DNA of 64,000 nucleotides from the sequence record NC_061443.1. One strand, 5' to 3'. How positions within the stretch are numbered: the first letter of the stretch is position 1; every line of letters starts with the position of its first letter. This document shows, one piece after another, positions 25,927-55,083 of the stretch. The position numbers and the translations under genes were made by a program. The notes beneath the pieces were generated by a model. It did not search any database. It was not told the DNA's origin and saw nothing but the letters and a program-made list of their open reading frames with translations.

Positions 25927-26415
25927 TTAGGCAAAACGCCCACCACGCCATGCGGCCTTAATGAGCAACTTTGCCACGATTTCGTTCTTCATTGTCTTTC
26001 GCTTGGCGTTGCTTCTGACAAATGCAGAGCCGAACTTATTCACGACGATTAGGCCGCAGCCTAACTCTTTAATGCGACCAATAATCTTATCGCCGTGAGT
26101 CTCAAACAGTCGTTCATCAATGATGAAGTACATACGCATACAGAAAGGCAAATACTTGTGCCACTTCTTATCGGTGTTGAAGTCAGCCCAGCAACTCTTA
26201 ACCTCAGTGATAATCATATCACACTTGGTATTCAGGCAGAACACGTCAGCCCTTAAGTTACCATGCTTAATCAAACCGAGTTCAACGTGGCAGGAATAGC
26301 GTTTGTCAATCCAGTAGCGCTGTGCAGCTTCGGTGAGAAATGCCGTCTTATCAGGACGGCTCATTGATTTAAATACTGCTTGAAGGGGTTCAGCCTTGCG
26401 CCGCTTATAAGCCAT
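25927..26415 (-). CDS. MmcB-like PD-(D/E)XK endonuclease
   Basis: RADVFCL...IITEVKSCWADFNTDKKWHKYLPFCMRMYF matches the MmcB family pattern. Confidence 0.7.
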   Translation of the reverse strand: MAYKRRKAEPLQAVFKSMSRPDKTAFLTEAAQRYWIDKRYSCHVELGLIKHGNLRADVFCLNTKCDMIITEVKSCWADFNTDKKWHKYLPFCMRMYFIIDERLFETHGDKIIGRIKELGCGLIVVNKFGSAFVRSNAKRKTMKNEIVAKLLIKAAWRGGRFA

Positions 26416-26863
26416 ACGATTCGATAATGTCCAGGGCCTGCTCTACAATTGGACGGAGTTTCTTATCCAACTTGTTGAGAGCTTTATCCGCTCTAAACCA
26501 TTTGCGTTCACGGGTCAGGGCTTCGTCATATTCGGTCAACATGGTCTTGACCTTCATGACGTACCATTCAACGTGTTGCTCACGGCCGGTCTTGCCTTTG
26601 ACATAACGCATGATATCTACGAAGTCTTTAGGCTTACCGAGAACACCAGCTTCTTCCATTGCTTCTTTAAGCGCACTGTCGAGCGCAGTCATTCCCTTTT
26701 CCACGCCGCCTTTTGGGAGACCCCAATTGCCTGCGTGAGTCGTACGGATGAGCAGCAACTCAATCGTACCGTCCTTTTTCTTGCGATATGGGATGACACC
26801 AGACTGCTTACGTGCTTTCTTTTCACTCGGCAGTTTGGCTGACAATGATACGGTAATCTTCAT
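26405..26863 (-). CDS. Nudix hydrolase
   Basis: QSGVIPYR...LLLI...WGLPKGGVEKGMTALDSALKEAMEEAGV: slightly variant Nudix box (first Glu replaced by Met, RE by KE). Confidence 0.88.
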   Translation of the reverse strand: MKITVSLSAKLPSEKKARKQSGVIPYRKKKDGTIELLLIRTTHAGNWGLPKGGVEKGMTALDSALKEAMEEAGVLGKPKDFVDIMRYVKGKTGREQHVEWYVMKVKTMLTEYDEALTRERKWFRADKALNKLDKKLRPIVEQALDIIESYGL

Positions 26864-27363
26864 AGGGAATCAAGCCCTCTCGGGAGGTCAACATCCCACG
26901 AGCCAGCGTTGTCTTTCCACAGACCCTGATTCTGCAATTCTTTATACGCATCATAAAGAGTCACACGAGCCTGCACAGAAACTTCGTTGGTACCCGCGGC
27001 ACCTAGGCTGTAGCTGTACATACAGCCAGGGAAGTATTGTGTACGATTTGCCTCGTGAGAGTCAAACACAATCTGGCCCTCGCTGTTGGAAATAACAGCA
27101 TGAGATGCCATACCACCCTGTCCGAGAATGACGATTTCATATTCAGGATGCTTGTTATAGCAACGCTGAACGAACTCGGCGCAGTCTGCAAATGGTCGAG
27201 CTACGGCAGCAGCACGATTGCAGTTGAACTGGGCAGCAGACTCAGAAAGAGAACGCGCACCAGTCAGATTCATAGCCGAGGCAAAGATAAGAGTTGCGAG
27301 CGATTCAGGCTCAACGGCAGTGGGGAAAAACTTTGTGCCCCACGCTTGTGATAGCGAAAGCAT
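26860..27363 (-). CDS. hypothetical protein
   Basis: 167-aa ORF with AAGGAG RBS; coupled to the Nudix gene. Confidence 0.65.
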   Translation of the reverse strand: MLSLSQAWGTKFFPTAVEPESLATLIFASAMNLTGARSLSESAAQFNCNRAAAVARPFADCAEFVQRCYNKHPEYEIVILGQGGMASHAVISNSEGQIVFDSHEANRTQYFPGCMYSYSLGAAGTNEVSVQARVTLYDAYKELQNQGLWKDNAGSWDVDLPRGLDSL

Positions 27364-27392: not shown

Positions 27393-27400
27393 AAATTAGT
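27393..27400 (-). promoter_or_regulatory. ACTAATTT variant of the putative late promoter
   Basis: Intergenic, 30 nt upstream of ATG 27363; one mismatch to consensus. Confidence 0.4.
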
Positions 27401-35326: not shown

Positions 35327-36204
35327 TATCCACCTCTACGACCTCGCTGCGCTGCAAGAGCAAGCGCTCGCTGTTCCTCGGCTTTGTTCTTATCGTGAAC
35401 GTAAGCACTATGCCAGTACAGCAATTTGTTGATCGTTATATCATCTGGCACGTAGATGTTTTTGGCGCTCGCAAGGTCAAGCGTCATGTTCATCATTGAC
35501 GTATCAGAGAACACACGGAAGTAGCCTAAGATATCAATTGGAGTTTTATACTTATACGTGCGGAAGCATTTGTTGCACTTGTGGGCTGTCTCCAACTCAC
35601 AGCTAACATAGCCATGACTGCCCGCATCCATCAATTCGATTGGGTCGGCGTACTCAAGCGTTTGCTCAAGAGGCAGGTCGCTGTCCATATACATTGCATT
35701 CATGACCTGAGTACGGTCACGGTCTTCCGCAAGTGTTTCAGCATCAATCCAGCGTTGAACGGTAGGATGGCGCAAGCCTTGTGGAAGGTCGCGCCATTTG
35801 TTGGTCACTACGTTTTGTCGCATGACTTCTTCGGTATTAAGCAGGTTGCAGTCTACTTCTACGAATTTGCAACCACGTGGCCTGTCATAGTAACGCTCTC
35901 CTCGCATGTCAACGAAGAACGTTTGGGTGCATCGCCATTCGTACAGACGATGCGACTTCGGCCAACTATTAGCGTCAAACATTGCCAGCATATAACGGAA
36001 GTCTTCGAGGTACATATCTCGGATTCTAACGTTGGTGAAGCGCTGCAACGTATCGACAAAGAGTTCAGGCAGTCTATACTTCTGGGCGTTGAACAGGCTA
36101 GACATTGCATCCGCAGTTATCTGGCTGATACGCACATCAGACCTACCTGATGGTAGATATATCTCTAACATTAGCGCACGAACATCGAAGGGTTCATATC
36201 CCAC
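35326..36204 (-). CDS. tail/baseplate assembly chaperone (T4 gp26/gp51-like) with CxxC
   Basis: W-R-C and C-N-K-C motifs; C-terminal TINKLLYWH motif; paralogous to 36171..36854. Confidence 0.5.
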   Translation of the reverse strand: MGYEPFDVRALMLEIYLPSGRSDVRISQITADAMSSLFNAQKYRLPELFVDTLQRFTNVRIRDMYLEDFRYMLAMFDANSWPKSHRLYEWRCTQTFFVDMRGERYYDRPRGCKFVEVDCNLLNTEEVMRQNVVTNKWRDLPQGLRHPTVQRWIDAETLAEDRDRTQVMNAMYMDSDLPLEQTLEYADPIELMDAGSHGYVSCELETAHKCNKCFRTYKYKTPIDILGYFRVFSDTSMMNMTLDLASAKNIYVPDDITINKLLYWHSAYVHDKNKAEEQRALALAAQRGRRGG

Positions 36205-36854
36205 GCACGAACGCTTTTGCGTTTACATGCAGGGCATTCGAGACTGATATCGGTGAGCACACCATGACGTGATGCAAGCACCCACTCAGACAGTTCAAGC
36301 CAGAGTTTCAAGTCTTCCTGTTCTTCCAGGCGTGCTACGTTTCGGTCGAACTCGCGTCCCATGTGGGCTACGTGCCAACTGAACATATCTTCCGACGCAC
36401 GTTCGTAGTGACGCATACGAGGCAGGTCAAACGTTTCATGCTCGGCATTGAGTTGCGCTACAGTCAGTGATGTTTCATCGACAACACCGACGTTGTTGGC
36501 AGCACACGGAAACGTGTTGATAGCTCCTCCGTCAGGACGCAGTTCATTCACGATACCGTCGGAATATTCAAACAGCGGTTTATTGCAACGCCAGTGCGTC
36601 ATCAGAGGCATCACGGAGTTCATCCACATACGCTGCTGGAAGACGAGCGCATAGGCATCAGGCACAGTCAGTTCTTCGAGAGGAATAGACAGGCAGGGCG
36701 CTAGAGCATCGAGCAGGATGTACTTCATATCCTTCGCATCAATCGCTTTCGCAATCGCACGGTTCTCTTTGCCACTAAAGCGACGCATCGTGAACACGTC
36801 AGGAAGTTGTGCCTTGTAACCATGCGACGGTAAACTCGCTGTTTGAATTTCCAT
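36171..36854 (-). CDS. tail/baseplate assembly chaperone (T4 gp26/gp51-like) with CxxC
   Basis: SLPSHG...MRRFSGKE start, LTVPDAYALVFQQR, W-R-C and CPAC motifs. Confidence 0.5.
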   Translation of the reverse strand: MEIQTASLPSHGYKAQLPDVFTMRRFSGKENRAIAKAIDAKDMKYILLDALAPCLSIPLEELTVPDAYALVFQQRMWMNSVMPLMTHWRCNKPLFEYSDGIVNELRPDGGAINTFPCAANNVGVVDETSLTVAQLNAEHETFDLPRMRHYERASEDMFSWHVAHMGREFDRNVARLEEQEDLKLWLELSEWVLASRHGVLTDISLECPACKRKSVRAWDMNPSMFVR

Positions 36855-36865
36855 TTGTTCTTATC

Positions 36866-37378: not shown

Positions 37379-37380
37379 GA

Positions 37381-38052
37381 TTATTCCTCTACTATGACAA
37401 GCACAGGTCGAACATCGTTATCGAGTTTGAGGAACGTAGCGCCAACCAGATAGCCGCCTTTCTCAATTTGCTTCACCACTGCTTTTTCGTAGTCCGTTTC
37501 CCATTGCTCACGTTGAGAGGCCTTGTAGCCTTCGAACGTTTCAGATGCGTCATAATAGTTATAGACGCCACCGGTCGGCATAGGGATACGTGCAAGGAAC
37601 TGAATGCGACCAGCGTTCTTAAACTTAGCCTTATGCAGTTCTTGAGTCAGCTTAGTGTTCTCGGCCTTAGAGCCAGGAACAGCTTTGAAAGGTTTCTTCG
37701 GTTGTGGCTCTTTAGGCGCAGCAGGGAGTTTCTCACGCGCAGGAGTGTTCTTATCAGAGGCTTTCTTAACGCGAACACCACTGACCGTTCCTGTGAATGG
37801 ACGACTGCGACTTAACAGTGAACGCGCAACTGGCGCATCAACGGTGAAGACTACAGACGGGTCATCCTTGTGCAGCACATAGAACTTGTTACGCTTCGCA
37901 GCAACGATACCAAACACATCTTTTTCTTCGATATCGGCTTCGTGCTCTTTGTTCTCGATACTGACCTTGCGCTTACCTTCGAAGCGATACCAGTCGCAGT
38001 CTTGAATAGACACGTCAGGCTTACGTGCGCTTTCGCTCAGTAAAATAAGCAT
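37381..38052 (-). CDS. hypothetical protein (candidate internal head protein; shared domain)
   Basis: 223 aa; N-terminus MLILLSESA, then WYRFEGK...DVFGI...KDDPSVVF...SRSRPF. Confidence 0.7.
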   Translation of the reverse strand: MLILLSESARKPDVSIQDCDWYRFEGKRKVSIENKEHEADIEEKDVFGIVAAKRNKFYVLHKDDPSVVFTVDAPVARSLLSRSRPFTGTVSGVRVKKASDKNTPAREKLPAAPKEPQPKKPFKAVPGSKAENTKLTQELHKAKFKNAGRIQFLARIPMPTGGVYNYYDASETFEGYKASQREQWETDYEKAVVKQIEKGGYLVGATFLKLDNDVRPVLVIVEE

Positions 38053-38061
38053 AGAGTCTCC

Positions 38062-38095
38062 AAAACGAAAAGGGCCAGAACGAATCTTGGCCCTT
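38062..38095 (-). terminator. intrinsic terminator after tail tube gene
   Basis: AAGGGCCAAGA-TTCG-TTCTGGCCCTT followed by TTCGTTT. Confidence 0.7.
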
Positions 38096-38103
38096 GTGTT
38101 TTC

Positions 38104-40366: not shown

Positions 40367-40711
40367 TCAGTAGCAAATCACATTAACGCGCTGGTCTACG
40401 TCACTTACCAATACCGATTGATCCATTTTGCCTGTGAGCGTGAACTGACCTTCAATGATCATCTGCCCACCAGCGAACTGGAGGATGATAGGTTCAGCCG
40501 TATCAATATACAGCAGACCTTTAATAGCAGGCAGTTGGTAGCCTTTCGCCCCTACGATGATTGATTGCTGCATGAACATGCCGTCTTCGGGAATACCTAC
40601 AGCAGACGACTGACGTTTCATGACAGCGTTCTGTTGGCCCGATACGGAACGTACACGGCTATCAACGACGAGCGTACGGTCTAGCTTGCGATACTTCTCG
40701 CGTGTGTACAT
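40367..40711 (-). CDS. hypothetical virion protein
   Basis: 114-aa ORF between tail completion and sheath genes. Confidence 0.6.
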   Translation of the reverse strand: MYTREKYRKLDRTLVVDSRVRSVSGQQNAVMKRQSSAVGIPEDGMFMQQSIIVGAKGYQLPAIKGLLYIDTAEPIILQFAGGQMIIEGQFTLTGKMDQSVLVSDVDQRVNVICY

Positions 40712-41406
40712 TAGTCCGTCTCCTCTTCATCTTCGTCCTGAGTCTGCGCAGCCATAGCACGAGGACCCAAGTCCATATCGATCTCAACGTTCTCGGTAAT
40801 CTCACCGTAGTTGTTGATCTTAGCCTGTTCCATGTTGAATCCAATCTGGGAGTTAATCGTGATTGGAATCTCCAGCTCGAAGCTACCCGGTGTACTGCCG
40901 TCATCGAGGTCATCAATGTTAGGCATAGGCAGAGTATCATCCAGCTTAACACGCACTGTCCACTTAGCTGTAGGCATCTCAATAGAGAAGCTCATTAAGT
41001 CAGTCAGTCCAGCAACCATTAGCTGTTGAACACACAGCAATGCTTGGTCAATGTTCATGAACTTAAGGTACAGCGAACCAGACAGCGTTATCGGGAAGTA
41101 ATAGTTCGTTACTACGATAGCATTAGTGCCATCGTTACCCAACGCCCAGCCTGAGCCGTGACGTGCAATGTTCTTTATGTTGACAGACTGTTCACGGTTG
41201 AAAGCCATAGTCGGCAGTTTGAACCAACCGTACGGATAGTCAGTGCTTTGATTGTTCGTTGCACGAATACCCTGCTTAGGGTTATTATGCACAGACCAAA
41301 CAAAACGCTTTAACCCGAAGCCTTGTCGGAATTGGCGTTGAAAGCCAAATATGGTTGCTCGCAGCGATGTGCTGTTCTTGAGCATACCAGCAAGGTTTGC
41401 ACTCAT
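40711..41406 (-). CDS. tail completion / terminator-like protein (gp15-like)
   Basis: Position upstream of sheath; beta-rich fold-like pattern with acidic C-terminus. Function inferred. Confidence 0.45.
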   Translation of the reverse strand: MSANLAGMLKNSTSLRATIFGFQRQFRQGFGLKRFVWSVHNNPKQGIRATNNQSTDYPYGWFKLPTMAFNREQSVNIKNIARHGSGWALGNDGTNAIVVTNYYFPITLSGSLYLKFMNIDQALLCVQQLMVAGLTDLMSFSIEMPTAKWTVRVKLDDTLPMPNIDDLDDGSTPGSFELEIPITINSQIGFNMEQAKINNYGEITENVEIDMDLGPRAMAAQTQDEDEEETD

Positions 41407-41471: not shown

Positions 41472-41885
41472 CTAGTCGAATCGTAAACGAATCAGTGAAG
41501 AAGCAGTGGCAGAGTCAGATTCAATTGTGATATCTTCTTCGTCTTCCAGATCATCTTCATCAAGGTCTTCATCTTCGTCCTCGTCGGAGTCAGAGTTCAG
41601 ACTAATGATTTCGTCATCGCCGTATAACGACGCGACTTGTTCTTCCTCGGCATTAAGCGCTAAAGCAGCAGATAACGCAGCGACGGATTCATTCATACCC
41701 GATGCAGAACTCACGGAGTTAACGAGGCATGACGCTTCGAAGTTGTCTGAGAGTTCACAGCAGAGAAAGTCCTCAGTGTCTGGCGCTACAGCAGCTTGAG
41801 CAAGCAAGCGGGAAGCATCCATCCACTGTCCGTCACGCGCTGCGACGATTGCCAGTGCAGCTAAGGAACCAGATAAAGTCTTCAT
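41472..41885 (-). CDS. small acidic protein (possible head core component)
   Basis: 137 aa with a D/E tract and SxS motifs (LVNSVSS, ISLNSDS, ITIESDSA). Confidence 0.65.
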   Translation of the reverse strand: MKTLSGSLAALAIVAARDGQWMDASRLLAQAAVAPDTEDFLCCELSDNFEASCLVNSVSSASGMNESVAALSAALALNAEEEQVASLYGDDEIISLNSDSDEDEDEDLDEDDLEDEEDITIESDSATASSLIRLRFD

Positions 41886-41938: not shown

Positions 41939-43039
41939 TTATCCGCGAACTGCTTTAGCCACAGAACGCACGTTCGCCAGAGTGAAGGAGAAGGTGCTAG
42001 ACAGCAACCAACCGCGGTCGGTGTTGCCCTGGTTTGCGCCGGAAGTCGGAGTAGACTGGGTGCCGCCACGAGTGGTGTACACTGCGTGGTAGTCCTGGTC
42101 AGCCAGAACGTACAGCTCGCCGTCTTGCAGAACGCGGTGCTCTGGAGCGCGGAAGCCGTCAGTTACCAGTTCCATACCCAGCAGGGTACCCAGACGACCT
42201 GTGGTGATCAAGTCATACTTAGACACTGGGTCCAGAGCAGAGCTGAACTGATCGTTACCAACGATATCGTTCCAGTAGTCCTGCGCCATCACAGCGGTGC
42301 TAACAGGCAGCGGCCATGAAGACACAGAATTTTTCAGAGTAGACAGCAGACGCGGAGTCAGGTCACCGTGAACGAAGGTCATCGGGTTAGCAACGCCGAC
42401 TGCCTGGTCACAAGCACGTTTCCACAGACGGTCTTCTGCAACCATGATAGAAGACAGGCCGTCTTGCTGCGCACGGTCCAGCAGGTCGCCGTTGATCTGG
42501 TCCAGATCCATTTTGCTGACGCGGATGTTGGATTTCAGTTCGAACTCAGCAGGCGTGTATACACGACCGCGGAATTGGTAGTAACCCATGTCAGAAGGAC
42601 CGGTAGCGATGATTGCTTCCGCCTGGTGAATTTTCAGTTCGATACGAGCGATATCGCCCTGACGAACGGTAGCGCCTTTACACACTTTGCGCAGCAGGCC
42701 AGCACGTTCTGCACGGTCTTCGATAGATGCAACGATAGAAGCACCCAGAGAAGCCCACTTTTCACCAGAGCTGTCAGCTACAGCTTCCTGGAACAGTTCA
42801 ATCTTCTCTTGCTCTGACAGGCCGCCAGCGTTTGCAGAGGTAGAGTGAACCAGTTCGCCGTTCTGGAACGCGCCCATCAGCTTGGTGATTTGGCCCAGAA
42901 GGTCTTTTTGGCTCGATGCGTTGATCTCACCAGTGGAAGAGGAAAGCGCCAGCTCACCTTTACCACCAAAACGCAGGTCTTCGATTGGCGCGCCGTTACG
43001 CAGGGTTACTTTAGCGCCGCGCATTAAAGAGTTGTTCAT
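41939..43039 (-). CDS. major capsid protein
   Basis: 366 aa; AGGAG RBS; strongly biased codon usage; position in head module; C-terminal HK97-fold-like pattern (GWLLSSTFSFTLANVRSVAK). Confidence 0.75.
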   Translation of the reverse strand: MNNSLMRGAKVTLRNGAPIEDLRFGGKGELALSSSTGEINASSQKDLLGQITKLMGAFQNGELVHSTSANAGGLSEQEKIELFQEAVADSSGEKWASLGASIVASIEDRAERAGLLRKVCKGATVRQGDIARIELKIHQAEAIIATGPSDMGYYQFRGRVYTPAEFELKSNIRVSKMDLDQINGDLLDRAQQDGLSSIMVAEDRLWKRACDQAVGVANPMTFVHGDLTPRLLSTLKNSVSSWPLPVSTAVMAQDYWNDIVGNDQFSSALDPVSKYDLITTGRLGTLLGMELVTDGFRAPEHRVLQDGELYVLADQDYHAVYTTRGGTQSTPTSGANQGNTDRGWLLSSTFSFTLANVRSVAKAVRG

Positions 43040-43860: not shown

Positions 43861-45906
43861 TTAGAAGGTCAGACGTTTCAGTTTGTCGTCGAAGGATGAG
43901 CCAGTGGAAGCTGAACTCTGGGATTGAACAGACTCTTGGTCCTGATTCAGAAGTTCCGCAGCAGAAGGCTGTTTGACCGGAGCGGTCGCTACCTGCTGTT
44001 GAACAACCGCCGGACGCTCGGCACTAACAGTACCCGCAGCGGCGTCGATAGATTCAGAGATTTCGTTCTGCGCGACTTCTGATTTGCTCATAAGCTCATT
44101 GGCTTTGGACAGAGCAGTAGTCAGGAAGTCTTTACCGTGAGCGATGAATGCACGTTCAATCAGAGCGCGAGGCTCTTTGATACCAGCGGCAGACAGTGAG
44201 CCGGCCAGGCTATCAACGATTGGGTTGCGAGTATCACCCCAGTAGTTTTTCGTAACACCCAGCTGGGCAGAAGACAGAGCCGCGATGAAGCGTTCGCTGT
44301 GATTAGCAACGGCGTCTTCGATGGTTGAAGTAACGTTCGCAGTAGCTTCGCTAATACGCGCGTCGGCATCAGCCACCAGCATTTTATCAACTGGCAGTTC
44401 GAACTGGTGCGGCATAAAGCCGAACGATTCACAAGTACCGGTAACGCCCGTGTTGTTTAACGAGTGCGATACGGCACGGATGAAATTATCAGTATCGAAA
44501 GATTTCACCGCATTTTCTTCGCCAACTGCATTAGATACAGAAGCGAGAGTTGCGCGGGCCAGAGGTTCGCCGTCGTAGAACATGTGAACGGTGTTCACTT
44601 TGCCAGTGACGCGGCTCAGGCTTACCAGAGCTGGGTCCAGCGTACCATGCGTGGCAGACGCAGAAGACAGACTGTTGAAGGTACGGCTGACTGCTTTGCT
44701 TTCAGAATCGAAATCGTCTTCGTCTTCATCGTCGAGGTCGAAATCATCTTCTTCAAGTTCTTCGTCGTCGTCGTCCAGATCTTCGTCTTCGTCGGAGCCT
44801 GATTCAGAATCGAAATCGTCTTCGTCTTCGTCATCCAGGTCTTCTTCGTCGTCGAGATCATCTTCTTCGTCGTCGAGGTCTTCGTCGTCTTCTTCGTCGT
44901 CTTCTTCGTCGTCGTCAGAACTGGATTCAGAATCGAAGTCATCATCTTCTTCATCATCCAGGTCTTCGTCGTCGAGGTCGTCTTCATCCAGATCTTCGTC
45001 GTCGAGGTCGTCTTCGTCGTCGATATCATCTTCATCATCGTCAGATGATTCGGAATCAAATTCGTCGTCTTCGTCTTCGTCGTCTTCGTCATCGAGATCG
45101 TCTTCATCAACGATATCAATGTCGCTGTCATCGCCAGACTGGGATTCGATAGGTTCATCGACCAGCGCTGCGGAACAATGAGCACAGAACACAGGCTCGT
45201 CATCGGAGCTTACAGTGAACGGCTGTTCGCAGTTAGCGGAGCAGCTATAGATGTGCGCGTCAACTTCGTCGCCAGCAGAAGACAGAGCAGCGATTGCTTC
45301 TGGTGCTTCTTGCGGCTCACAGGAAGTAACTTCCTGACCGGTGTACGGGTCGAAGTTCGCAGCAGTAGCAGCGTTGAAGCTACCAGTGCCAGACAGCGCG
45401 GTAAACGTGTGTGCGTTGCTCAGAGCCAGCGCGAAGTTACGTTGAGCATCTTCGGCAGTTTTGCCCGTTGCAACCAGACCAGCGTGTTCAATTTGCTCGT
45501 CGGCAGAAGCGGATTCGGCCAGAGCTTGAGTAACACGTTCGTCAGTGATTTCGGACAGGTCAGCAGAGCACGATGGGCAGGAGCCCTGAACCAGTGCAGA
45601 ACTGTCGGAAATAACGTGGCAACCACATCCATCTAAACAGATGGTGTAATGTGCTTTCACGTCACCCGCAGATGACTGCGACTGGACTTCGGCTTTCTCA
45701 ACCAAATCAGGATGCTCTACCAGCAGTTCTTCACCGCCGTTAGGATTGTAAAGGTCCGCGCCACTCTGCGAAGCAAAGCCTACACCAGCAGAGTTCCCGA
45801 AAATCATCAGGTTCTGACCGAGTGCAGTTTGGCGAAAGTTCTCTACTGCCTGATTATGGTTTTTACCGACACACAGGATACCCGCGAGTTGGGTAATCTT
45901 TGGCAT
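43861..45906 (-). CDS. prohead scaffold/core-like protein with very long acidic tract and Cys-rich motifs
   Basis: About 140-aa D/E tract (44690-45120) punctuated by FDSES; CxxxC/CxxC clusters; located between protease and MCP. Probable ATG at 45906 (track start is 45921). Confidence 0.6.
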   Translation of the reverse strand: MPKITQLAGILCVGKNHNQAVENFRQTALGQNLMIFGNSAGVGFASQSGADLYNPNGGEELLVEHPDLVEKAEVQSQSSAGDVKAHYTICLDGCGCHVISDSSALVQGSCPSCSADLSEITDERVTQALAESASADEQIEHAGLVATGKTAEDAQRNFALALSNAHTFTALSGTGSFNAATAANFDPYTGQEVTSCEPQEAPEAIAALSSAGDEVDAHIYSCSANCEQPFTVSSDDEPVFCAHCSAALVDEPIESQSGDDSDIDIVDEDDLDDEDDEDEDDEFDSESSDDDEDDIDDEDDLDDEDLDEDDLDDEDLDDEEDDDFDSESSSDDDEEDDEEDDEDLDDEEDDLDDEEDLDDEDEDDFDSESGSDEDEDLDDDDEELEEDDFDLDDEDEDDFDSESKAVSRTFNSLSSASATHGTLDPALVSLSRVTGKVNTVHMFYDGEPLARATLASVSNAVGEENAVKSFDTDNFIRAVSHSLNNTGVTGTCESFGFMPHQFELPVDKMLVADADARISEATANVTSTIEDAVANHSERFIAALSSAQLGVTKNYWGDTRNPIVDSLAGSLSAAGIKEPRALIERAFIAHGKDFLTTALSKANELMSKSEVAQNEISESIDAAAGTVSAERPAVVQQQVATAPVKQPSAAELLNQDQESVQSQSSASTGSSFDDKLKRLTF

Positions 45907-45984: not shown

Positions 45985-47106
45985 TTAAACTTTTCTGCTA
46001 TCAATGTCAGCTTGCGGAATATAGCGATTTTCGAAGTATTTATTGACCACTTCTACTCCGTTTAACGAGTAAACGTTACGCATACTATCACCCCAAACCA
46101 TTAGCTCTGCAAGGGTAGCGAAGTGCTCCGTAGGAACGGATTTCATTGTCCTTGCATCAAGCGAATCCGGGTGGATTTTCTTGCCACGAATAGCCTGTTC
46201 GAACTTCATACGGTCAACGTTTCGTATCATCGTATGGTCCACAAAGTGAGCCAATTCGTGCGTCATCGCATGGCCAAATGAGCGGCTATTATAACCACCA
46301 AACAGCTCGACCAATTGCTTCGGACTCATTGAAATTACACCATACAGGAATCCTGACACGGTATAAGTCATTATATGAGAACCGCCAACATCGTTGCCTT
46401 GTTTAACGATACCTACGTACAGCCGTTTGAAAGGCAGAGGCACATTAAGACCAATGCCAGGCATAACGTTTTCCTGAATGTCTTTGAGTACATAATCAGG
46501 AGGACTAACGCCTTCGAGCAGTATCTTACGTCCACCTATCAGGAGGTCATCGGCACCTAATACTTCGAGATGCACATTACCGCACTTAGGTATCTTTTGG
46601 ACAGCGTAGTTGTTCGGCGTACCGCCCGGATAGTTCGCGTTAGCATACACCAGAGCTTTCTTTGTGCCAAACAGAGGCATGTCTTGCAGACGACGCATAC
46701 GGGCTTTAAGGGATTCTGGAGTACCGCCACCTTCGGGCACAGGGTCTGCTTGTGGTGCAGGTTGCTCAGGTTCTGGTTGCACTTTGACAGGCACAGGCTT
46801 CGGTTTAGGCTTAGGTGCAGCTTCTTTCTTCTTCTCCTCGTAAGGAGTGAAGTCGAATCCTGGCTTAAAGAGGGCGTCAGGCTTAGCAGTGAATGGGCGA
46901 CTGTTTTCAATAATGCGAGCGCCGTCTTCTCCACTGATTGCATAAGCCATGTCGTATTTAGGATGGGCTATATAGTACAGGTCGTCACTTACCTTGAGCA
47001 GACCCACAACCTCGCGTGTTTGCATATGCACACCGTTTGAGATCATGGCATCTGGCCCTAGATAACGAAAGTACGAATAGTCTACAATGAATAGACCTTC
47101 GATCAT
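45985..47106 (-). CDS. hypothetical protein with shared N-terminal domain and C-terminal HExxH zincin-like metallopeptidase motif
   Basis: HAMTHELAHFVD and a downstream EHFA; Pro/Lys linker. ATG 47106 overlaps the upstream stop (TAATG); track start is 47148. Confidence 0.6.
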   Translation of the reverse strand: MIEGLFIVDYSYFRYLGPDAMISNGVHMQTREVVGLLKVSDDLYYIAHPKYDMAYAISGEDGARIIENSRPFTAKPDALFKPGFDFTPYEEKKKEAAPKPKPKPVPVKVQPEPEQPAPQADPVPEGGGTPESLKARMRRLQDMPLFGTKKALVYANANYPGGTPNNYAVQKIPKCGNVHLEVLGADDLLIGGRKILLEGVSPPDYVLKDIQENVMPGIGLNVPLPFKRLYVGIVKQGNDVGGSHIMTYTVSGFLYGVISMSPKQLVELFGGYNSRSFGHAMTHELAHFVDHTMIRNVDRMKFEQAIRGKKIHPDSLDARTMKSVPTEHFATLAELMVWGDSMRNVYSLNGVEVVNKYFENRYIPQADIDSRKV

Positions 47107-47885
47107 TACTTCATCCGCATCAGGTGTTCTTTGTACGTTGCAGCACACGCGAATGCTGGATCATCGACAGAGCTACATTCAAAGCCAGTCAACATCTTGC
47201 AGTCACGATATACCAGACGGCCTGTACGTCCGTCGAGATACGTTGGCTTGTTGAATGCAGTGTGTGAACAGAAGTTACGATGACGCGGAGTAACCAACTG
47301 ACCACAGATGCTGCATTTGTATGCCTTGTACGTTGTACCTTTCGAATACGTGTTAAGCTCACCACTCAGGATGCGGTCACAACGTTCCTGACAACGTGTA
47401 CGGTCAAACGCTAACAGCAGAGTTAGACGCGCATGGTTGCCACGGAAGTTCTGGAGCTTAGACAGGTTCGAGTCGAAGATCATGCCCATTGCTTGGCGAT
47501 AATCTTTGTTATTGTGCTCAATGAACGTTGGCTTGCCGATGAACGTCTGGTACGCAAGACGGCCTTGGTCAGGGTTAAACGTCAACCACTCTTCCAGACT
47601 GAATGCGTCACCGTTCGTGTTAGGCAGCTCGGTGATGTTTACAGGCACAGGCACGATAACGTAATCACGAATATTGCGTGACGTGTTGTACTGCTCGGCC
47701 GCTTTAGACAACCACACGTTCACGTCAAGATTGAATGAACCTGATTGCAGTCCCAACCGCGAAGGGTCCACACGAATAGACTTAGCAGTTTGGCTAACAT
47801 CTTCTTTGTGCATATCAATCGCGGTCAGTCCAACTAGGCCCATGTCCGAGGTATCAAACGACTCGGAACGAATGGACTTGTCCAT
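47106..47885 (-). CDS. prohead maturation protease (HK97/T4 gp21-like serine protease)
   Basis: FIEHNN (His) and FECSSVDDPA (E.S.V..PA catalytic-Ser pattern); inserted CSIC...CSH. ATG 47885 has a GGAG RBS (track start is 47957). Confidence 0.65.
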   Translation of the reverse strand: MDKSIRSESFDTSDMGLVGLTAIDMHKEDVSQTAKSIRVDPSRLGLQSGSFNLDVNVWLSKAAEQYNTSRNIRDYVIVPVPVNITELPNTNGDAFSLEEWLTFNPDQGRLAYQTFIGKPTFIEHNNKDYRQAMGMIFDSNLSKLQNFRGNHARLTLLLAFDRTRCQERCDRILSGELNTYSKGTTYKAYKCSICGQLVTPRHRNFCSHTAFNKPTYLDGRTGRLVYRDCKMLTGFECSSVDDPAFACAATYKEHLMRMK

Positions 47886-48316: not shown

Positions 48317-49192
48317 TTAACCTCTCAGTGCACCACGCGCCCAGGACTTAGCGAGAGCCAGAGTCATGCGGCTTGGGTTTTGCAGTTTGACTTCACCTTT
48401 GTGGACAGCAGTGAACGGTTCATGCGCGTTCTCTCCGCGACCCGAACGATAGGCTGCTTCATTGAAGCCGTCGAATAACGTCACGACCCAGCCTGTGGAT
48501 TTGTCAGAACACTCACCGCAGGCTTTGTCCCAGCTAATCTTACCGCACACACGTCCACCCGCATTAACCGCGTAGCTTACTTGCTCAGTGCCTTTATAAA
48601 CGTCTTGAGCTTTCAGCGTTTTGAACGTCACACGCGCAGCAGACTCAGAACGCGGCGTCATCTTCTCTTTCAGTGCTTCAATATCAAGTGAAGACCAGAA
48701 GGATTCAAACAGTGCCGCGAACTTCTGTTCGATAGGCAGGTCGATAGCATTGATCTGTGCGATGGTGCTTGAGCTATCGTTGAGCACACGGTTGATAAAG
48801 TACCCACCGAGGATGATTGGCATTTGAGTGCCTTGATCTCCAGTCGTTAGCCCAGCACGTTTCGCATACATCTCACACATCCCGATAGCAAGACGCGCCA
48901 TAGTCTGGAACGTCTGCTTCTCGGTACTGTTGGCGATCTCAGTGTAGATACGGCTTGCAATTGCAGGAACAACTGTACGCTTCGCTACACTAAGAATGTC
49001 TTCTGGTGTGATTGATTGACCGAGTTTCTTCTTGGCCGCGAGTTCGAAAGCGTTAATCAGGCTTGCTTTGTTCGCTGGTGTCAGAGACTCGCTCAACTTG
49101 ATAGTTGTCTCCTCCGAGCTGTTCACCAGACTCGGCTGCGGTGCCACCTTCAGTCTGCGAACTCCCGTCGTCTTCAATCGAGCTACTGTCAT
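48317..49192 (-). CDS. hypothetical protein (candidate head protein)
   Basis: 291-aa ORF with CAGGA RBS; IKLSESL motif near the N-terminus. Confidence 0.65.
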   Translation of the reverse strand: MTVARLKTTGVRRLKVAPQPSLVNSSEETTIKLSESLTPANKASLINAFELAAKKKLGQSITPEDILSVAKRTVVPAIASRIYTEIANSTEKQTFQTMARLAIGMCEMYAKRAGLTTGDQGTQMPIILGGYFINRVLNDSSSTIAQINAIDLPIEQKFAALFESFWSSLDIEALKEKMTPRSESAARVTFKTLKAQDVYKGTEQVSYAVNAGGRVCGKISWDKACGECSDKSTGWVVTLFDGFNEAAYRSGRGENAHEPFTAVHKGEVKLQNPSRMTLALAKSWARGALRG

Positions 49193-50297
49193 TTGTTTCT
49201 TCCTGATTAGGAGCCTGCATGTACTGCAACAGGCCAGAGTTCATAATCTCCTCGTTAACGTCAAGGCCACGGAGCGTAGCCAGATTAGCGAGGTAATTGA
49301 GAGCAGGTTCGACCATACCCAGATTACGACAGCCCCAGTAGGCAATGTCATAGCACAGGTCTAAATTAATAGCAGTCTGGTCGAACAAGAAACTTTTTGG
49401 ATTCTGCTTTGTAGCTTCAATCCCTTGAATCGCTTGTCCGATAGCATTGATGTTATCGCCACGGCGGTAGAAGATATCAGACAGCATAGCATACGCTTCA
49501 ATACGATCAGGGCGGAATGCAATCGCACGATAACAAGCGCACACAGCCTCATGAATGAAGCCTTGTTTGAACGTAGCTTTCGCCAGTTCGATGTTAGCGA
49601 TTGTAACGTAATCAGGCCACTTAGCAATGCCAGTCAGTCTGTCTACCTCACGGCGCGCATCTTCCAGCAGGTCAGGACGTTCATAATAGATGACTGAATA
49701 GCAGAGTTCACGCGCATAGTAGAAACTGCAACGGTCATCATGCGGATAGTCACCTACATCCAGACCGAGTTCCAGCAGATAGTTACGTGCTTTTTCGTGG
49801 TCTGGATAGTGGTCAGTTGCGAACGGCGCTTCAACCGATTTCAGTTGCTGACCAGGCTTACGCGAGGACAGGACTTCATGCGCACGATATTTCCAGAAGT
49901 AAGAGCGACGACGATACGCTTTCATCTGCTGGTAGTGACTGTCACCGTTACGCATCAGAATCCAAACAGCTTCTGCTTTCTTGATGCCTTGCGTATTGCG
50001 TAGCGCCTCAACCCAGTTAGGGTCATCGAAGCGCTCGTCAATATCGAGCCACACTACAAGGTCGTCTTCCGAGAAAGGCGTAGCGGCCAACTCACGGCTT
50101 GCACCTAAGTTACGTTCAGGACTAACGTCGAACGTATGATAGATGTTAGGGTGAACGAACGCCGAGATGATGTTCGTGGTTTGGTCTTCGCTGCCTGTGT
50201 CAACGATACTGATAGCGTCAGCACCAGCAACGTGTTTCAACCACTCACCGATATTCTTTTCTTCATTACGGCAGATAGCCGCTACGCAGATTCTCAT
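49053..50297 (-). CDS. glycosyltransferase family 2 with C-terminal TPR repeats
   Basis: ICRNEEKNI, IVDTGSEDQT, DxD motif WLDIDE, HYPD..K.RNYL, then helical repeats (..YR.IAFRPDRIEAY). GAGG RBS. Confidence 0.88.
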   Translation of the reverse strand: MRICVAAICRNEEKNIGEWLKHVAGADAISIVDTGSEDQTTNIISAFVHPNIYHTFDVSPERNLGASRELAATPFSEDDLVVWLDIDERFDDPNWVEALRNTQGIKKAEAVWILMRNGDSHYQQMKAYRRRSYFWKYRAHEVLSSRKPGQQLKSVEAPFATDHYPDHEKARNYLLELGLDVGDYPHDDRCSFYYARELCYSVIYYERPDLLEDARREVDRLTGIAKWPDYVTIANIELAKATFKQGFIHEAVCACYRAIAFRPDRIEAYAMLSDIFYRRGDNINAIGQAIQGIEATKQNPKSFLFDQTAINLDLCYDIAYWGCRNLGMVEPALNYLANLATLRGLDVNEEIMNSGLLQYMQAPNQEETNDSSSIEDDGSSQTEGGTAAESGEQLGGDNYQVERVSDTSEQSKPD

Positions 50298-51230: not shown

Positions 51231-51232
51231 AG

Positions 51233-53179
51233 TTACTCCAGTTTGTACTTGCTCTTAAACTCTGCGAGTCCCATAACAGGGATGCCTTTGTCCATCGCTT
51301 TCTGGAGTTTCGCAGAACCAGAGCCAGGGTCTTTTGCGATCAGTATCGTCGTATCGGACTTCATGCTATCAGAAGCAGTTCCACCGAGTTCGACAATACG
51401 CTTCATCAAGTCACGGTCACGAATGCCAGTGAATGCAACGTTAATGCCTTTGAGCTTCGCACTAACCACTTTCACCTTCTTCGGAGGAACGAGAGTCACG
51501 CCCATGTTCGCAGCCATTTCGTAGGACTTCACGGCAGCTTCTGCAATGGCAGGTCCGAGTTTATCAATGCCGTGCATAGCGCTAATCTTCAACGTCAGGT
51601 CAGCGGTATAACCACGCTTGAGGTAATACTCAAGATTAGGGATAGCATCAACAACTTTGTCGAACGTAGTGTTAGCACCGCGCATAAAGAATGACGCTGT
51701 AGCTCTCAACCACGTATTCATAGGCACGCCCGCTTTCAACGACTTGAGGTCTTTCGCCAACTGACGACCACGAGAGTCACCAACTATCTCACGCAACGCA
51801 CCCATTGAAGCATCAAACAATTGCTCAGGCGTTTTAATACCAGACGCAATAAGCATTTTGCAGGTACCCGGTCCCGTATTCGCAACGTCAAGCCCTTTCA
51901 AGAACGAGCCAAGCATACGCGCATCAGCAGCAGATGATTTCGTTTTGACAACGAACTCTACACCACTAATCTTGTATGGCACGTCAGGCAGCTGAGGCTT
52001 CTTAGCAGGCTTGAGAATCTCCATGATGTATGGGATGACCTTGCCGCTTCGAATCAATTTAACCTTAGCTCCAGGACCGAGTGGCCGCTTAGGACCAAGC
52101 ACTGTGCCTTTCTTCTTCGGCTTGAGATAGCCGTGCTCAACATAGAAACCGTTGTGCGCAGAAGCACGTTCAACTGTCACACCGCCCGGCATGATAGTTG
52201 GCGGGAAGATAGCAACAGGAGCCATCACGCCGTACTTGGACTCTTGGTAGATGATCTCTTTGACAGTCACGATAACCGTATCAGACTCAACGTTCATCTT
52301 GAACTTAAAGGCGTGTCGTGGGTTAGACGCTGTAGCTTTTGGAGTTGCTACGTCGCGTGTCATCACGATGCCGTCGAGTTCATACTTCGCCTTAGCGATA
52401 CGCTTGTCCAACCAAGGAATGAGTTCTTCCTGATTGGCGAAACGCAGCGGACCGAAGTGACGAACTACCTCGAATCCCCAACGCTCCAGTAGCTCAAACT
52501 GCTTAGACTGTTTGTCCGTTGCACCTTTACCTGCAAGAATACCGAAGCACACCATGTGGACGTACTTGAACTCTTTAGGAGTTTCGAAGTTACGCACAAG
52601 GCCGGACGCAGCATTACGTGCAGCCTTATACTTCCCACCAGCAGACTCGTGCATCTTCGCCATGAAGGTCTTATAGGGAATCAGCGCTTCGAAGCGCATG
52701 ATGACCGTACCTTTCTCAGGTATCTTCTGAGGGATACTCATGGCGGGTATATGGTGAGAAACATCTTTACCGTGAGTAGCATCACCACGAGTGAACGCTT
52801 GTACTGGCACGCCTTTTTCATAAACGAGTTCAATGCTCAGGCCATCCAGTTTGTCTGTAAGAATCCAATCAACGTCTTCGGCCAAGGCTTTAGACAGTTG
52901 CTTACCGCCGAGCGTATACTGATCGAGACTTGCCATAGGCACAGGCAGCTTAACATCGGAGTCGTCACGCGCGCCAACCTTGCGCGCCAGCTTTGACTTA
53001 GGCCAACGCGTGTCGATGTAGCGACGAATATGGTCATAGACCGCATCCGATATCAAGCCTTCCGAATCAGTGTGAAACGCATCATCAAGATGCGCCACAA
53101 GTTTCGTTGTCTGCGTCAGATTGAGCGTGTCCAGAACCTTATCGGGATTCCTTTCGAGCCGCTTCAATGAGATTTGCAT
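51233..53179 (-). CDS. ligA: NAD-dependent DNA ligase
   Basis: SDAVYD (domain Ia), MASLD, KLDG active site, TRGD..HG, DGIV, AFK, OB fold (RSGKVIP), HhH and C-terminal BRCT. ATG 53179 has a GGAG RBS (track start is 53203). Confidence 0.93.
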   Translation of the reverse strand: MQISLKRLERNPDKVLDTLNLTQTTKLVAHLDDAFHTDSEGLISDAVYDHIRRYIDTRWPKSKLARKVGARDDSDVKLPVPMASLDQYTLGGKQLSKALAEDVDWILTDKLDGLSIELVYEKGVPVQAFTRGDATHGKDVSHHIPAMSIPQKIPEKGTVIMRFEALIPYKTFMAKMHESAGGKYKAARNAASGLVRNFETPKEFKYVHMVCFGILAGKGATDKQSKQFELLERWGFEVVRHFGPLRFANQEELIPWLDKRIAKAKYELDGIVMTRDVATPKATASNPRHAFKFKMNVESDTVIVTVKEIIYQESKYGVMAPVAIFPPTIMPGGVTVERASAHNGFYVEHGYLKPKKKGTVLGPKRPLGPGAKVKLIRSGKVIPYIMEILKPAKKPQLPDVPYKISGVEFVVKTKSSAADARMLGSFLKGLDVANTGPGTCKMLIASGIKTPEQLFDASMGALREIVGDSRGRQLAKDLKSLKAGVPMNTWLRATASFFMRGANTTFDKVVDAIPNLEYYLKRGYTADLTLKISAMHGIDKLGPAIAEAAVKSYEMAANMGVTLVPPKKVKVVSAKLKGINVAFTGIRDRDLMKRIVELGGTASDSMKSDTTILIAKDPGSGSAKLQKAMDKGIPVMGLAEFKSKYKLE

Positions 53180-53220
53180 GTTGTTCTCTCCAATCGTCAT
53201 CAATACTGGTATTTACAGCA

Positions 53221-55083
53221 TTAGGAGGCGATAGGGTCTTTGTTGACAGGGTAATCTTCCACCATGTCGTACACGCGATTGAACAACTTAGGCGTCATAT
53301 CTTTCACATGTTCGGCGTAGTCAAAGAGGTTCTGTTTACGCGCACGGTTCACACGGACCTGACGTACTTCATCTGGACTGTTGGTGATATCGTACAGCGT
53401 ATAGATAACGATGTTGTCAGAAGCGTTATGCGTACTCACACGGACAACCAACCAGTCACGTTTGAGTTTAGCATCTGCCTTGAACTGCAACACATCACCT
53501 TCTTCTGCCTCTTCGGCGCGAGCGCTCGGAGTAGATTGGTTAGCAGCCGCAATCTTCTTGGCAGTTTCGTTGGCTTCCTGTTCAGCCGCAGCAACGTCAG
53601 AGTCTTGGTCTTCGTCAGCACCAGCTTCATCTACTGCGTCAGTAGCATCTGCCTCTGAGTCATCGTCAGCCGATTCGTCATCTTCGCTTCCGTCACCTTC
53701 TGAATCAGCTCCTTCGTCGTCAGCATCCTCATCAGCCACGGATTCATCGTCGCTTCCATCGGATTCATCATCCCCATCTGATTCATCATCAGTGTCTGAA
53801 TCGCTATCGTCAGGATCTTCTTCTGCATCCGTTTCTTCCTCTTCTTCGCCGTCTGAGGAGTCTTCTTCCTCTTCTTCTGGCGGGGCTTCGGCAGGCTTCT
53901 TACCTTTCTTCGCACGTACCTTAGACGGCGCAACATCTTCTTCGTCGTCTTCTGGTTCGTCGATATCAGACAGGTCAAGCGCAGGCTCGTCGTGGTCTTG
54001 CGAATCATCGCCTCCAAACAAGTTGCCGATGGAGTCTTCGATGTTAAACATGTCACCCGCGAACGGACTACGCGATAGGACGTCTTCGAGTTTCTGCTCG
54101 TCAAAGTCCAAATCAACTTCTACTTCTTCAATCGCATCGTCCAGTTCTTCGTGCTCGATAACACGCACACGCTTACCACGTTTGTCGATCCCATCAGAAT
54201 AGACAGTACGGACTTCGGCCTTAGGAGCTTCAATCTCACCGCGCTTAACCTTGTTGCGAAGATCACGCATCTCAGCAGAGCGTTCCGCAGCAGTCTTACG
54301 CGCCTGCTTCTGGAGCTCTTTGCGTTGTTGCTTCTGCTCCAGGATTTTAGCGTTGTTGGCGAGGCGTACTGATTCTTCCTCTTCCAACTGCGAACGCTTG
54401 CGACGTCGGCGCACTTGCTTGCGATACGCTTTGACCGTATCGACGTCAACTTCACCCTTAGGCCAATCATTGAAAGGCAGGATGTTAGTGTCGTGGACAA
54501 GCAGGTCGTACTGCGCATCATCAATTTTGACATACAGTCCTTCGGTATTGATGACAATGCCACCTTTACCTTGACGCAAGAAACGTACACCAATCATGTC
54601 GTTCTTGTAGAGCTTGAGCATACCCTTAGATGTTTTCACAGGGTATTCCATGCTCGGAACCATACGCCACTGGTAGTTATCGAAGTTGATACCGTTCACA
54701 GCCTCAGCCTTCACAGACTTAGGAGCGAAACGGGCAGCATCGAACTGCACACGATTAAGCTGGCGTTGCAGCGTTTGAGCACCAGCAGTCTTCGTGCGTG
54801 AATCACGTTGAACAACATCAGGCACTTTGCGCAGCTTTGAACTACGCTCCATCAGGAACAGACCAGTAGTCTTATCCAGAGGGAAATCAACGTGAGGCAT
54901 GTCAGCAAAGATAAGCGTGTAGCGTCCGCCATTGCGCAGCGGGAGAATGCCGAAAGTATCTCCTTCACGAATCATACGTTTATGAGTTCGTTGAGATACT
55001 TCTTTTCCGCGTGAACCTTTGTACTTCATCCACGCGTACTTCGTTACTGCATCTTCGTGAGATGCGGACACGGAAAGTATCAT
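53221..55083 (-). CDS. hypothetical protein with two copies of the shared domain, coiled coil and long acidic tract (candidate internal head protein)
   Basis: Starts MILSVSASH at ATG 55083 (track start is 55110); D/E-rich region about 53560-54130. Confidence 0.7.
   Translation of the reverse strand: MILSVSASHEDAVTKYAWMKYKGSRGKEVSQRTHKRMIREGDTFGILPLRNGGRYTLIFADMPHVDFPLDKTTGLFLMERSSKLRKVPDVVQRDSRTKTAGAQTLQRQLNRVQFDAARFAPKSVKAEAVNGINFDNYQWRMVPSMEYPVKTSKGMLKLYKNDMIGVRFLRQGKGGIVINTEGLYVKIDDAQYDLLVHDTNILPFNDWPKGEVDVDTVKAYRKQVRRRRKRSQLEEEESVRLANNAKILEQKQQRKELQKQARKTAAERSAEMRDLRNKVKRGEIEAPKAEVRTVYSDGIDKRGKRVRVIEHEELDDAIEEVEVDLDFDEQKLEDVLSRSPFAGDMFNIEDSIGNLFGGDDSQDHDEPALDLSDIDEPEDDEEDVAPSKVRAKKGKKPAEAPPEEEEEDSSDGEEEEETDAEEDPDDSDSDTDDESDGDDESDGSDDESVADEDADDEGADSEGDGSEDDESADDDSEADATDAVDEAGADEDQDSDVAAAEQEANETAKKIAAANQSTPSARAEEAEEGDVLQFKADAKLKRDWLVVRVSTHNASDNIVIYTLYDITNSPDEVRQVRVNRARKQNLFDYAEHVKDMTPKLFNRVYDMVEDYPVNKDPIAS

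Follow-up and report, generated by a model that had tools for sequence, protein, structure and literature searches.

A conserved N-terminal peptide ending in S-x-S as a candidate capsid-targeting tag in Erwinia phage pEa_SNUABM_2

The window and the N-terminal tag

The DNA analysed here (the window) is a stretch of 64,000 nucleotides identical to bases 62001-126000 of Erwinia phage pEa_SNUABM_2 (NC_061443.1, 265,442 bp), a giant (jumbo) phage of the genus Alexandravirus. Every gene of the window lies on the minus strand; among them are tail, baseplate and head-module genes (gp140, gp142 and gp144), a Nudix hydrolase gene (gp121) and many genes for hypothetical proteins. A sequence-only reading had noticed the motif S-x-S at the N-termini of several of these proteins and proposed that it belongs to a capsid-targeting propeptide which marks cargo, including the Nudix enzyme, and is removed by the prohead protease. 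The peptides it quoted are found where it placed them, at or near the starts of gp121, gp122, gp134, gp144, gp146 and gp150, and both of those assigned to gp117 are present in that protein (Table 1).

Enrichment was assessed among the 336 annotated proteins of the whole genome, 57 of which are encoded in the window. In its plain form, S-x-S within residues 2-15 was modestly more frequent than in shuffled sequences, both in the window (8 of 57 proteins; 3.7 ± 1.8 in shuffles, p ~0.025) and genome-wide (32 of 336; 19.4 ± 4.0, p ~0.003). Once refined to an exact position, the signal was much stronger: ten proteins have M-x3-[VIL]-S-x-S at exactly residues 1-8, while 5000 shuffles of residues 2-31 gave 0.38 on average and never more than 4. 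The pattern [VIL]S[LIVM]S[AKQNHS] occurred 15 times in the first 20 residues, where internal positions predict 0.46. An unbiased scan of the first 12 residues gave SLS as the most enriched tripeptide (11 vs 1.6), and SLS and S.SA came out at or near the top when gapped peptides were included. None of the control patterns A-x-A, T-x-T, G-x-G, S-x-E, L-x-E and A-x-E was enriched at N-termini; the three Glu patterns, for example, were found in the first 20 residues 24 (S-x-E), 35 (L-x-E) and 23 (A-x-E) times against expectations of 25, 38 and 30. The weak enrichment of plain S-x-S is the visible part of a much stronger nine-residue signal, and the reality of the N-terminal motif is a near-certainty.

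This signal, hereafter the tag, occupies residues 1-9 in about ten non-homologous proteins and follows the pattern M-[EKQ]-[IV]-[LF]-[VI]-S-L-S-[AK]. The pooled consensus of 24 tags is identical and is followed by a Pro/Thr/Ser-rich stretch; none of the conserved positions is Glu. Ten proteins fit the exact-position pattern, nine of which are listed in Table 1 (gp121, gp134, gp188, gp194, gp197, gp209, gp210, gp232 and gp241). Most of the canonical carriers are encoded outside the window.

Serine is a common residue, the match in gp122 looks accidental, and there are two sets of paralogues, gp134/gp150/gp117 and gp175/gp250. These facts would suit an origin of the motif in chance, shared ancestry or a nucleotide-level signal at gene starts. 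Chance is countered by the ten matches, against a shuffle maximum of four, and by the recurrence of the motif in Dickeya phage JA13 and in parts of Y3 and Yoloswag, while the same pipeline returned a single match in PaBG, where the motif is almost absent. In an all-against-all BLASTP comparison, the canonical carriers showed no similarity beyond the tag, and direct alignment of two carriers was confined to the first ten residues; paralogy was thus rejected as the source of the tag in these proteins. The only exceptions were gp134/gp150/gp117, which have a domain in common, and gp175/gp250. Depending on the gene, the tag serines are encoded by AGY or TCN and the leucine by CTN or TTR. This free variation of codons indicates selection on the peptide and rules out a nucleotide-level signal. 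We therefore give explanations of this kind almost no credence.

The comparison genomes were JA13 (assembled), Y3 and Yoloswag (each in part) and PaBG (whole). JA13 is a Salmondvirus whose capsid protein is ~72% identical to that of pEa_SNUABM_2. The tag is kept in JA13 and Yoloswag orthologues that are only 26-55% identical overall, and also in the part of Y3 examined. Orthologues of gp197, gp209, gp210 and gp232 begin with MEILVSISA, MQVLISLSK, MQIVFSLSK and MNVLISLSA, respectively, where the pEa_SNUABM_2 proteins have the tags given in Table 1. In each of JA13 and Y3, the tag is also found on proteins without an orthologue in pEa_SNUABM_2. One of these, JA13_190 (13859-14536, minus strand, of the JA13 piece), is a 225-aa protein in which a linker joins the tag to an ADP-ribosyltransferase domain (Pfam ART-PolyVal, E 2.4e-27, residues 33-216); its gene is flanked by the orthologues of gp209 and gp210, and pEa_SNUABM_2 lacks it. 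The 629-aa protein gp188 has two tagged paralogues in JA13. In PaBG, the covariation of the capsid-boundary motif with the N-terminal tag was examined, where most of the cargo has no orthologue and no clear tag emerged; a candidate PaBG tag, 'SLI', came from two paralogous adhesins. As a separate observation, the NAD-dependent DNA ligase of JA13 (JA13_137) starts with MTEFKSISAS (position 8128 of the JA13 piece), an S-x-S-A N-terminus that the pEa_SNUABM_2 ligase (window 51233-53179) does not have.

The other carriers are varied. Three are of extreme charge, gp209 basic and gp232 and gp241 acidic, and gp221 is of low complexity. Outside the window, gp177 (34715-40567, minus strand, of its piece) is a SNF2-family helicase of 1950 aa with a conserved S-x-S-A at residues 7-10, which recalls the packaged DarB protein of phage P1.

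The Nudix protein gp121 carries the tag ahead of a folded domain. It matches Pfam NUDIX (PF00293, E 9.6e-13, residues 22-141), with only weak matches in NCBIfam, and the Nudix-box residues E67, E70, E71 and G73 are invariant in its family alignment. Its AlphaFold2 model is an alpha/beta/alpha sandwich with a predicted local distance difference test score (pLDDT) of 88. Residues 1-13 have a pLDDT below 50 and the first Nudix strand begins at residue 18, so that the tag is an appendage to the fold. It is present throughout the Erwinia clade, taking the form MKLMISTSA in homologues with 64% identity, and is replaced by MKV[YF]LTLDE in Nudix proteins of the Dickeya clade. Relatives with 47% identity or less have no tag, their sequences opening directly with the Nudix domain. 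The Nudix family has gained the tag only within the Erwinia/Dickeya clade. In Yoloswag (KY448244), the annotated start of the Nudix gene, a GTG, is placed four codons too late (5238-5250 of the piece) and cuts off the tag; the upstream ATG yields MEIIVSLSA.

Table 1. Features of the window and tags of carrier proteins. Positions are those of the window; tags are given from residue 1.
Feature	Position	Strand	Remarks
gp121, Nudix hydrolase	26405..26863	-	Tag MKITVSLSA; canonical MKITVSLS at residues 1-8 (26840-26863), linker to about residue 17, then Nudix fold
gp134	37381..38052	-	Tag MLILLSESA; tag-like MLILLSES (38029-38052), KMPT-N at residues 19-83
gp188			Tag MKLMVSMSA
gp194			Tag MEVFVSLSA
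gp197			Tag MQIFVSLSK
gp209			Tag MKILISLSA
gp210			Tag MEIFVSLSK
gp221			Tag offset by one residue
gp232			Tag MEIYVSLSQ
gp241			Tag MEMLVSLSH
gp144, head maturation protease	47106..47885	-	MDKSIRSESF; S-x-S-F at residues 7-10 (S7-S9, 47859-47867)
gp140, major capsid protein	41939..43039	-	S-x-S at residues 33-35 (42935-42943) and 66-68 (42836-42844)
gp142, annotated 'ATPase' (PHROG 20988)	43861..45906	-	Between protease and capsid genes
gp143	45985..47106	-	Between protease gp144 and gp142; two KMPT-N stretches, Pro/Lys-rich linker
gp138	40711..41406	-	S-T-S-L at residues 12-15 (41365-41373); candidate processed head-module protein
gp139	41472..41885	-	Small, acidic tail, adjoins capsid gene; S-G-S at residues 5-7 (41865-41873)
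gp150	53221..55083	-	MILSVS-A (55066-55083), KMPT-N at residues 16-81 (Pfam)
gp117, 587 aa	23100..24863	-	Internal S-x-S at residues 86-88 (24600-24608) and 132-134 (24462-24470)
gp122	26860..27363	-	MLSLSQA, S3-S5 at 27349-27357; site likely not functional
gp146, long form	48317..49192	-	...IKLSESL; S-E-S at residues 34-36 (49085-49093); uncertain
CTAATTT copies, promoter-like	1860-1866, 15015-15021, 21803-21809, 27393-27399, 40353-40359, 55117-55123	-	

S-x-S sites in the head maturation proteins

The S-x-S motif also occurs in proteins of head assembly. One of them, gp144, had been counted among the tagged proteins; its S-x-S-F is conserved, in 42 homologues down to ~30% identity, but gp144 is the head maturation protease itself. 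Its AlphaFold2 model has a pLDDT of 81; the N-terminus, in which the motif lies, is disordered, with residues 1-14 below 50. The best structural match of the model is T4 gp21 (5jbl; Z 10.4, root-mean-square deviation 3.0 Å over 141 of 166 residues), followed by a match at Z 5.6 and by herpesvirus proteases at Z ~5, and the top five Foldseek hits are the same proteins at E 0.05-0.16. As modelled, gp144 has the gp21/herpesvirus assemblin fold. H124 and S181 are invariant in the family, and after S181 a zinc ribbon is inserted (C191, C194, C206 and H208, invariant or nearly so) that has no counterpart in T4 gp21. Searches of the PDB with phmmer and with a profile returned zinc fingers only.

In the major capsid protein gp140, the NCBIfam profile capsid_Caudo_2 (HK97-fold) and PDB 6wkk (280 residues), the sole PDB relative found, align only from residues 74-78. 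Both conserved S-x-S sites fall inside the N-terminal extension of ~70 residues that precedes this body. The site at linker position 66-68 is kept in 32 of 33 homologues with at least 55% identity, though the flanking linker varies. Among close homologues, residues 1-92 contain 2.68 S-x-S per 100 residues and the remainder 0.12, whereas Ser content alone predicts 0.93 and 0.48; the motif is thus ~3-fold enriched in the propeptide and ~4-fold depleted in the mature part. The maturation cut is predicted to follow S68, which would remove 68 residues, or 19% of gp140. The capsid protein of PaBG is reported to lose ~20% of its mass on maturation (PMC7412058).

The densest array of S-x-S sites is in gp142. 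This protein is not an ATPase: it has no ATPase domain and no match in Pfam or NCBIfam. It contains 26% Asp+Glu, repeated F-D-S-E-S modules and two zinc-ribbon-like Cys pairs, and is predicted to be disordered (Atlas model pLDDT 0.34). We counted 23 S-x-S in gp142, compared with 8.4 ± 2.6 in composition-preserving shuffles (0 of 20000 as high), while Ser-Ser pairs at other spacings were as frequent as expected. The homologues in JA13 (28 vs 11.6 expected) and Yoloswag (27 vs 10.5) are similarly rich, and 14 of the gp142 sites are in register with JA13_130. This abundance is what would be expected of a scaffold or core protein cut up like T4 gp22, gp67 and gp68, which are reduced to small pieces (PMC5694885). 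We regard gp142 as a putative head scaffold/core protein cut at many S-x-S sites.

The gp142 sites lie in acidic D/E-rich repeats of a kind that recalls acidophilic-kinase targets, and the head module contains a glycosyltransferase gene, gp147. The serines of S-x-S might accordingly be modified, by phosphorylation or by gp147-dependent O-glycosylation, instead of marking a cleavage site. Such modification would not account for the fixed placing of the motif at residues 6-8 after the initiator Met, nor for its depletion in the mature capsid protein and its exact position at the propeptide boundary. We consider it very improbable.

Other proteins show the motif as well. The S-T-S-L of gp138 is present in JA13 and Yoloswag despite diverged flanks. 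The N-terminus of gp139 reads MKTLSGSL in pEa_SNUABM_2, MKSLSGSL in Yoloswag and MKTLTGSL in JA13; in JA13, Thr replaces the first Ser, which makes this evidence weaker. The lineages also agree in register at sites close to the N-terminus of gp138, of the portal and of gp185 and at internal sites of gp117 and gp197.

Hydrophobic residues at tag positions 3, 4, 5 and 7 are conserved and are wanting at the S-x-S sites of scaffold-like gp142 and of the capsid protein, which suggests that the tag has a function beyond being cut. The tag does not have the features of a Sec, Tat or lipoprotein signal: its hydrophobic run is 3-4 residues long, and position 2 is Glu or Gln as often as Lys, where such signals have a positively charged n-region, a hydrophobic core of ~7-15 residues or more and a site of the A-x-A type or a lipobox. 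A true signal peptide of this genome, that of gp294, has a 10-residue hydrophobic core and looks quite unlike it.

KMPT-N proteins, promoter-like motifs and other examples

Three proteins that the sequence-only reading had treated as unrelated, gp134, gp150 and gp117, share the KMPT-N domain; its view of the carriers holds for the canonical set. We use the Pfam name, as the name KMPT-N is absent from the polyvalent-protein paper. The domain is clearly recognised in gp134 (PF20294, E 1.9e-19), and in gp117 it occupies residues 139-201 (Pfam), directly after the second S-x-S. The gp134 orthologues begin with MLFFVSVSA (JA13) and MLLFISASA (Yoloswag), and those of gp150 with MLSQSA and MHSLSA, respectively. 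In gp117, the two peptides are VFMSASSA (residues 83-90) and EIASTSA (residues 129-135), and both internal sites are conserved in JA13 and Yoloswag. A further KMPT-N protein is encoded within the head module: gp143 matches PF20294 in two stretches (E 1.8e-31) and may be a head-core partner for gp117, gp134 and gp150. KMPT-N in these four proteins could possibly provide a second, domain-based route into the head.

The S-x-S-A of gp134, gp150 and gp117 stands ~10 residues ahead of KMPT-N, a domain also found in gp143 of the head module. This arrangement would be compatible with S-x-S as a cleavage motif and the tag as merely a removable cap that, for example, keeps enzymes inactive, with targeting performed by other parts of the protein or by KMPT-N. 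It is also in line with phage P1, where nine N-terminal residues of DarB were insufficient for targeting and 30 were sufficient (PMC9024508). The conserved hydrophobic positions of the tag, lacking at the scaffold and capsid sites, speak against a mere cap, and most canonical carriers have neither KMPT-N nor any other domain in common. We therefore judge the cap explanation unlikely, though it is the alternative to which we give most weight.

Two other examples were less convincing than gp121, which is canonical, gp134 and gp150, which have conserved tag-like N-termini, and gp117. The motif of gp122 is probably a chance match, as it is not kept in Yoloswag (MLSLNSAWG) or JA13 (MKTFPEVFG). That of gp146 is ambiguous: JA13 and Yoloswag each have one S-x-S nearby, out of register. 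In this gene, the extension above the annotated start (window 49096-49192) is conserved in JA13, which makes the upstream ATG at 49192 the probable true start. The glycosyltransferase gene gp147 (window 49053-50297, minus strand), inside the head module, adjoins gp146 and gp148.

Genome-wide, two 7-mers were strongly enriched upstream of genes. CTGTAAA(TA) is found ahead of genes of replication and recombination, namely those for polymerase, clamp loader, primase, ligase, SSB and the sigma factor, with CTGTAAATA 26-48 nt upstream of replication genes. [AG]CTAATTT precedes structural and lysis genes by 29-50 nt, including those for the sheath, tail, PAAR spike, endolysin and similar proteins. 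The window has 8 copies of CTAATTT, each of them on the coding strand; among those listed in Table 1, that at 27393-27399 heads the gp122-gp121 unit and that at 55117-55123 precedes gp150. Six of the 18 genes directly behind CTAATTT encode an N-terminal S-x-S tag (Fisher p ~0.0009). CTAATTT is the nearest upstream motif for 14 of 18 tagged genes, compared with 102 of 336 genes genome-wide, and for all nine canonical carriers on the minus strand. Public sequencing runs contained related sequence only in metagenomic DNA, and a search of them for RNA sequencing of infections found none.

Promoter context also bears on whether the tag might be an address to somewhere other than the head. It might, for example, be a degron (ClpXP-type or recognised by Zn-peptidase gp216 of the phage), bind a chaperone or act as a membrane/secretion signal. 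Several tags read M-basic-hydrophobic x3, which resembles the ClpX N-motif, and the neighbours of gp232 and gp241 look like early or middle genes. On the other side, the nine minus-strand carriers are all in structural-type units, and the S-x-S in which the tag ends is also that of the capsid propeptide, the head protease and the scaffold-like protein. As regards Sec or Tat export, a hydrophobic stretch of four residues is far too short. We think an address of this type improbable, somewhat more so than the cap.

Elsewhere in the window, ~1.3 kb (21842-23100) are without an annotated gene and contain short open reading frames only. One 28-nt direct repeat (at 22094 and 22483) and a terminator-like hairpin (21834-21855) lie in this stretch. 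Scans for tRNAs and Rfam families gave no hit in this stretch or in the rest of the window.

Proposed mechanism and comparison with known systems

The proposal of a capsid-targeting propeptide for cargo such as the Nudix enzyme, cut by the prohead protease, appears well supported and fits every computational test run. It draws this support from the tag, which is portable, conserved as a peptide, placed outside the fold and terminated by the S-x-S of head maturation proteins; from the modelled gp21 fold of the protease; from the location of carriers in structural-type units; and from the likeness of the cargo to T4 internal proteins and Alt. The proposal is modified in two respects. S-x-S alone looks like a cleavage motif, and the specific address would be the longer, hydrophobic eight-residue peptide.

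We favour the following mechanism, which we consider moderately probable as a whole: S-x-S would be the motif of the head protease, and the eight-residue N-terminal peptide would be a cargo tag like the capsid-targeting sequence (CTS) of T4. gp144 would recognise S-x-S and cut after the second Ser, at the boundary between the capsid propeptide and the HK97 body, at many positions in gp142 and at its own N-terminus. The short, strand-prone hydrophobic tag would dock cargo onto the assembling head core, and the shell would close around it. The protease would then remove the tag at S-L-S, and the mature cargo would be ejected with the DNA. We infer the cleavage, its exact bond, the protease responsible, the presence of cargo in virions and its injection. 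A more specific version has, in our estimate, about an even chance of being correct. According to it, a gp21-fold protease switched its P1 residue from Glu to Ser, and an eight-residue strand-like address loads a fast-changing injected set in jumbo phages of Erwinia and Dickeya and in related jumbo phages, comprising the Nudix hydrolase, the ADP-ribosyltransferase, the giant SNF2 helicase and polyanionic and polycationic proteins.

Several observations weigh against this mechanism. Ser at P1 would be unprecedented in the gp21 fold, as the characterised gp21-type proteases all have P1 Glu (T4 L/I-x-E, phiKZ S/A/G-x-E, SPN3US A-x-E; PMC5694885). In hhalign, a 42-sequence gp144 profile matched T4 gp21 with a probability of 0.2%, and gp144 had no match in Pfam or NCBIfam, with one of the 42 members touching Peptidase_S78 at E 0.25. 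The JA13 Nudix protein has T-L-D instead of S-L-S. PaBG, a distant relative with a homologous protease, has no comparable tag apart from its single match, and in its gp142 homologue S-x-S is not enriched and there is only a mild excess of A-x-A. The genes gp232 and gp241 lie in a plus-strand block beside replication and transcription genes, with no promoter motif of the structural type, and we infer the timing and class of both promoter motifs from the genes behind them only. In the literature on the clade, the Dickeya JA-phage paper contains no virion proteome and the PaBG paper reports 14 gel bands; the Y3 GenBank record has no notes on mass spectrometry, and a search for such data on fHe-Yen9-02 yielded nothing.

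If the mechanism is true, the head-carried, injected proteins of this clade could be read from genome sequence. The Nudix hydrolase, the ADP-ribosyltransferase, the SNF2 helicase and the DNA-mimic-like polyanions would be the first candidates for action against host defence or machinery. Among gp21-fold prohead proteases, gp144 would be the first with a predicted cut after Ser, which bears on substrate recognition. The tag would be among the shortest capsid-loading tags known and could be useful where reporters or enzymes are to be packaged into phages that infect plant pathogens. Two annotations can be corrected in addition: gp142 is not an ATPase, and the start of the Yoloswag Nudix gene is placed too late.

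N-terminal signals are known to load cargo into the heads of T4 and P1 for subsequent injection (PMC5694885, PMC9024508, PMC5512222). In T4, the CTS is carried by IPI-III, Alt, gp24 and others and is removed by gp21 (Mullaney and Black 1996, summarised in PMC5694885). As proposed for the present case, a short N-terminal peptide common to unrelated proteins ends in the motif of the head protease, the protease is of the gp21 fold, and the motif recurs in the capsid propeptide and in a much-cut scaffold-like protein, a role that the sequence predicts here for gp142. Small, highly charged cargo is likewise common to both, as is an ADP-ribosyltransferase, here in the relative JA13; T4 Alt, the parallel to JA13_190, is packaged through its CTS (PMC5694885, PMC5512222). 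The differences are that the T4 CTS is 10-20 residues long, compared with 8-9 residues of unrelated sequence here, that T4 cuts after Glu in L/I-x-E and not, as proposed here, after Ser in S-x-S, and that gp144 has no detectable sequence similarity to gp21.

The giant phages phiKZ, 201phi2-1 and SPN3US have head propeptides cut at S/A/G-x-E or A-x-E (PMC5694885, PMC10052503, PMC7411985). The substrates of their gp21-type protease are the capsid protein, the portal and many internal or ejection proteins, and conserved N-termini are found on diverged proteins. The P3-x-P1 spacing with a small P3 residue is the same as in S-x-S, whereas P1 is Glu instead of Ser and the propeptides are mostly longer than 100 residues, unlike the 8-residue tags. 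These phages are of another lineage; pEa_SNUABM_2 belongs to the PaBG/Lu11 'Lupandier' group and has no virion RNA polymerase genes in its annotation.

In the Dar system of phage P1, DarB, a very large anti-restriction protein of the helicase type, and others enter the head by way of an N-terminal signal, and the capsid protein is processed by an HK97/gp21-like protease, as would be the case here. The P1 signal is longer than 9 and at most 30 residues, no motif common to the Dar proteins has been reported, and the cut in the P1 capsid protein falls at E120/S121. Another parallel is offered by encapsulins, where a short cargo-loading peptide is sufficient to bring unrelated enzymes into an HK97-fold shell, as proposed for the tag. 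Unlike the tag, such peptides are usually C-terminal, bind the shell directly and are not removed, and encapsulins are cellular nanocompartments and not viruses. Taken together, the system described here is best filed as a variant of the T4-type capsid-targeting/propeptide kind and not as a member of the T4 sequence family.

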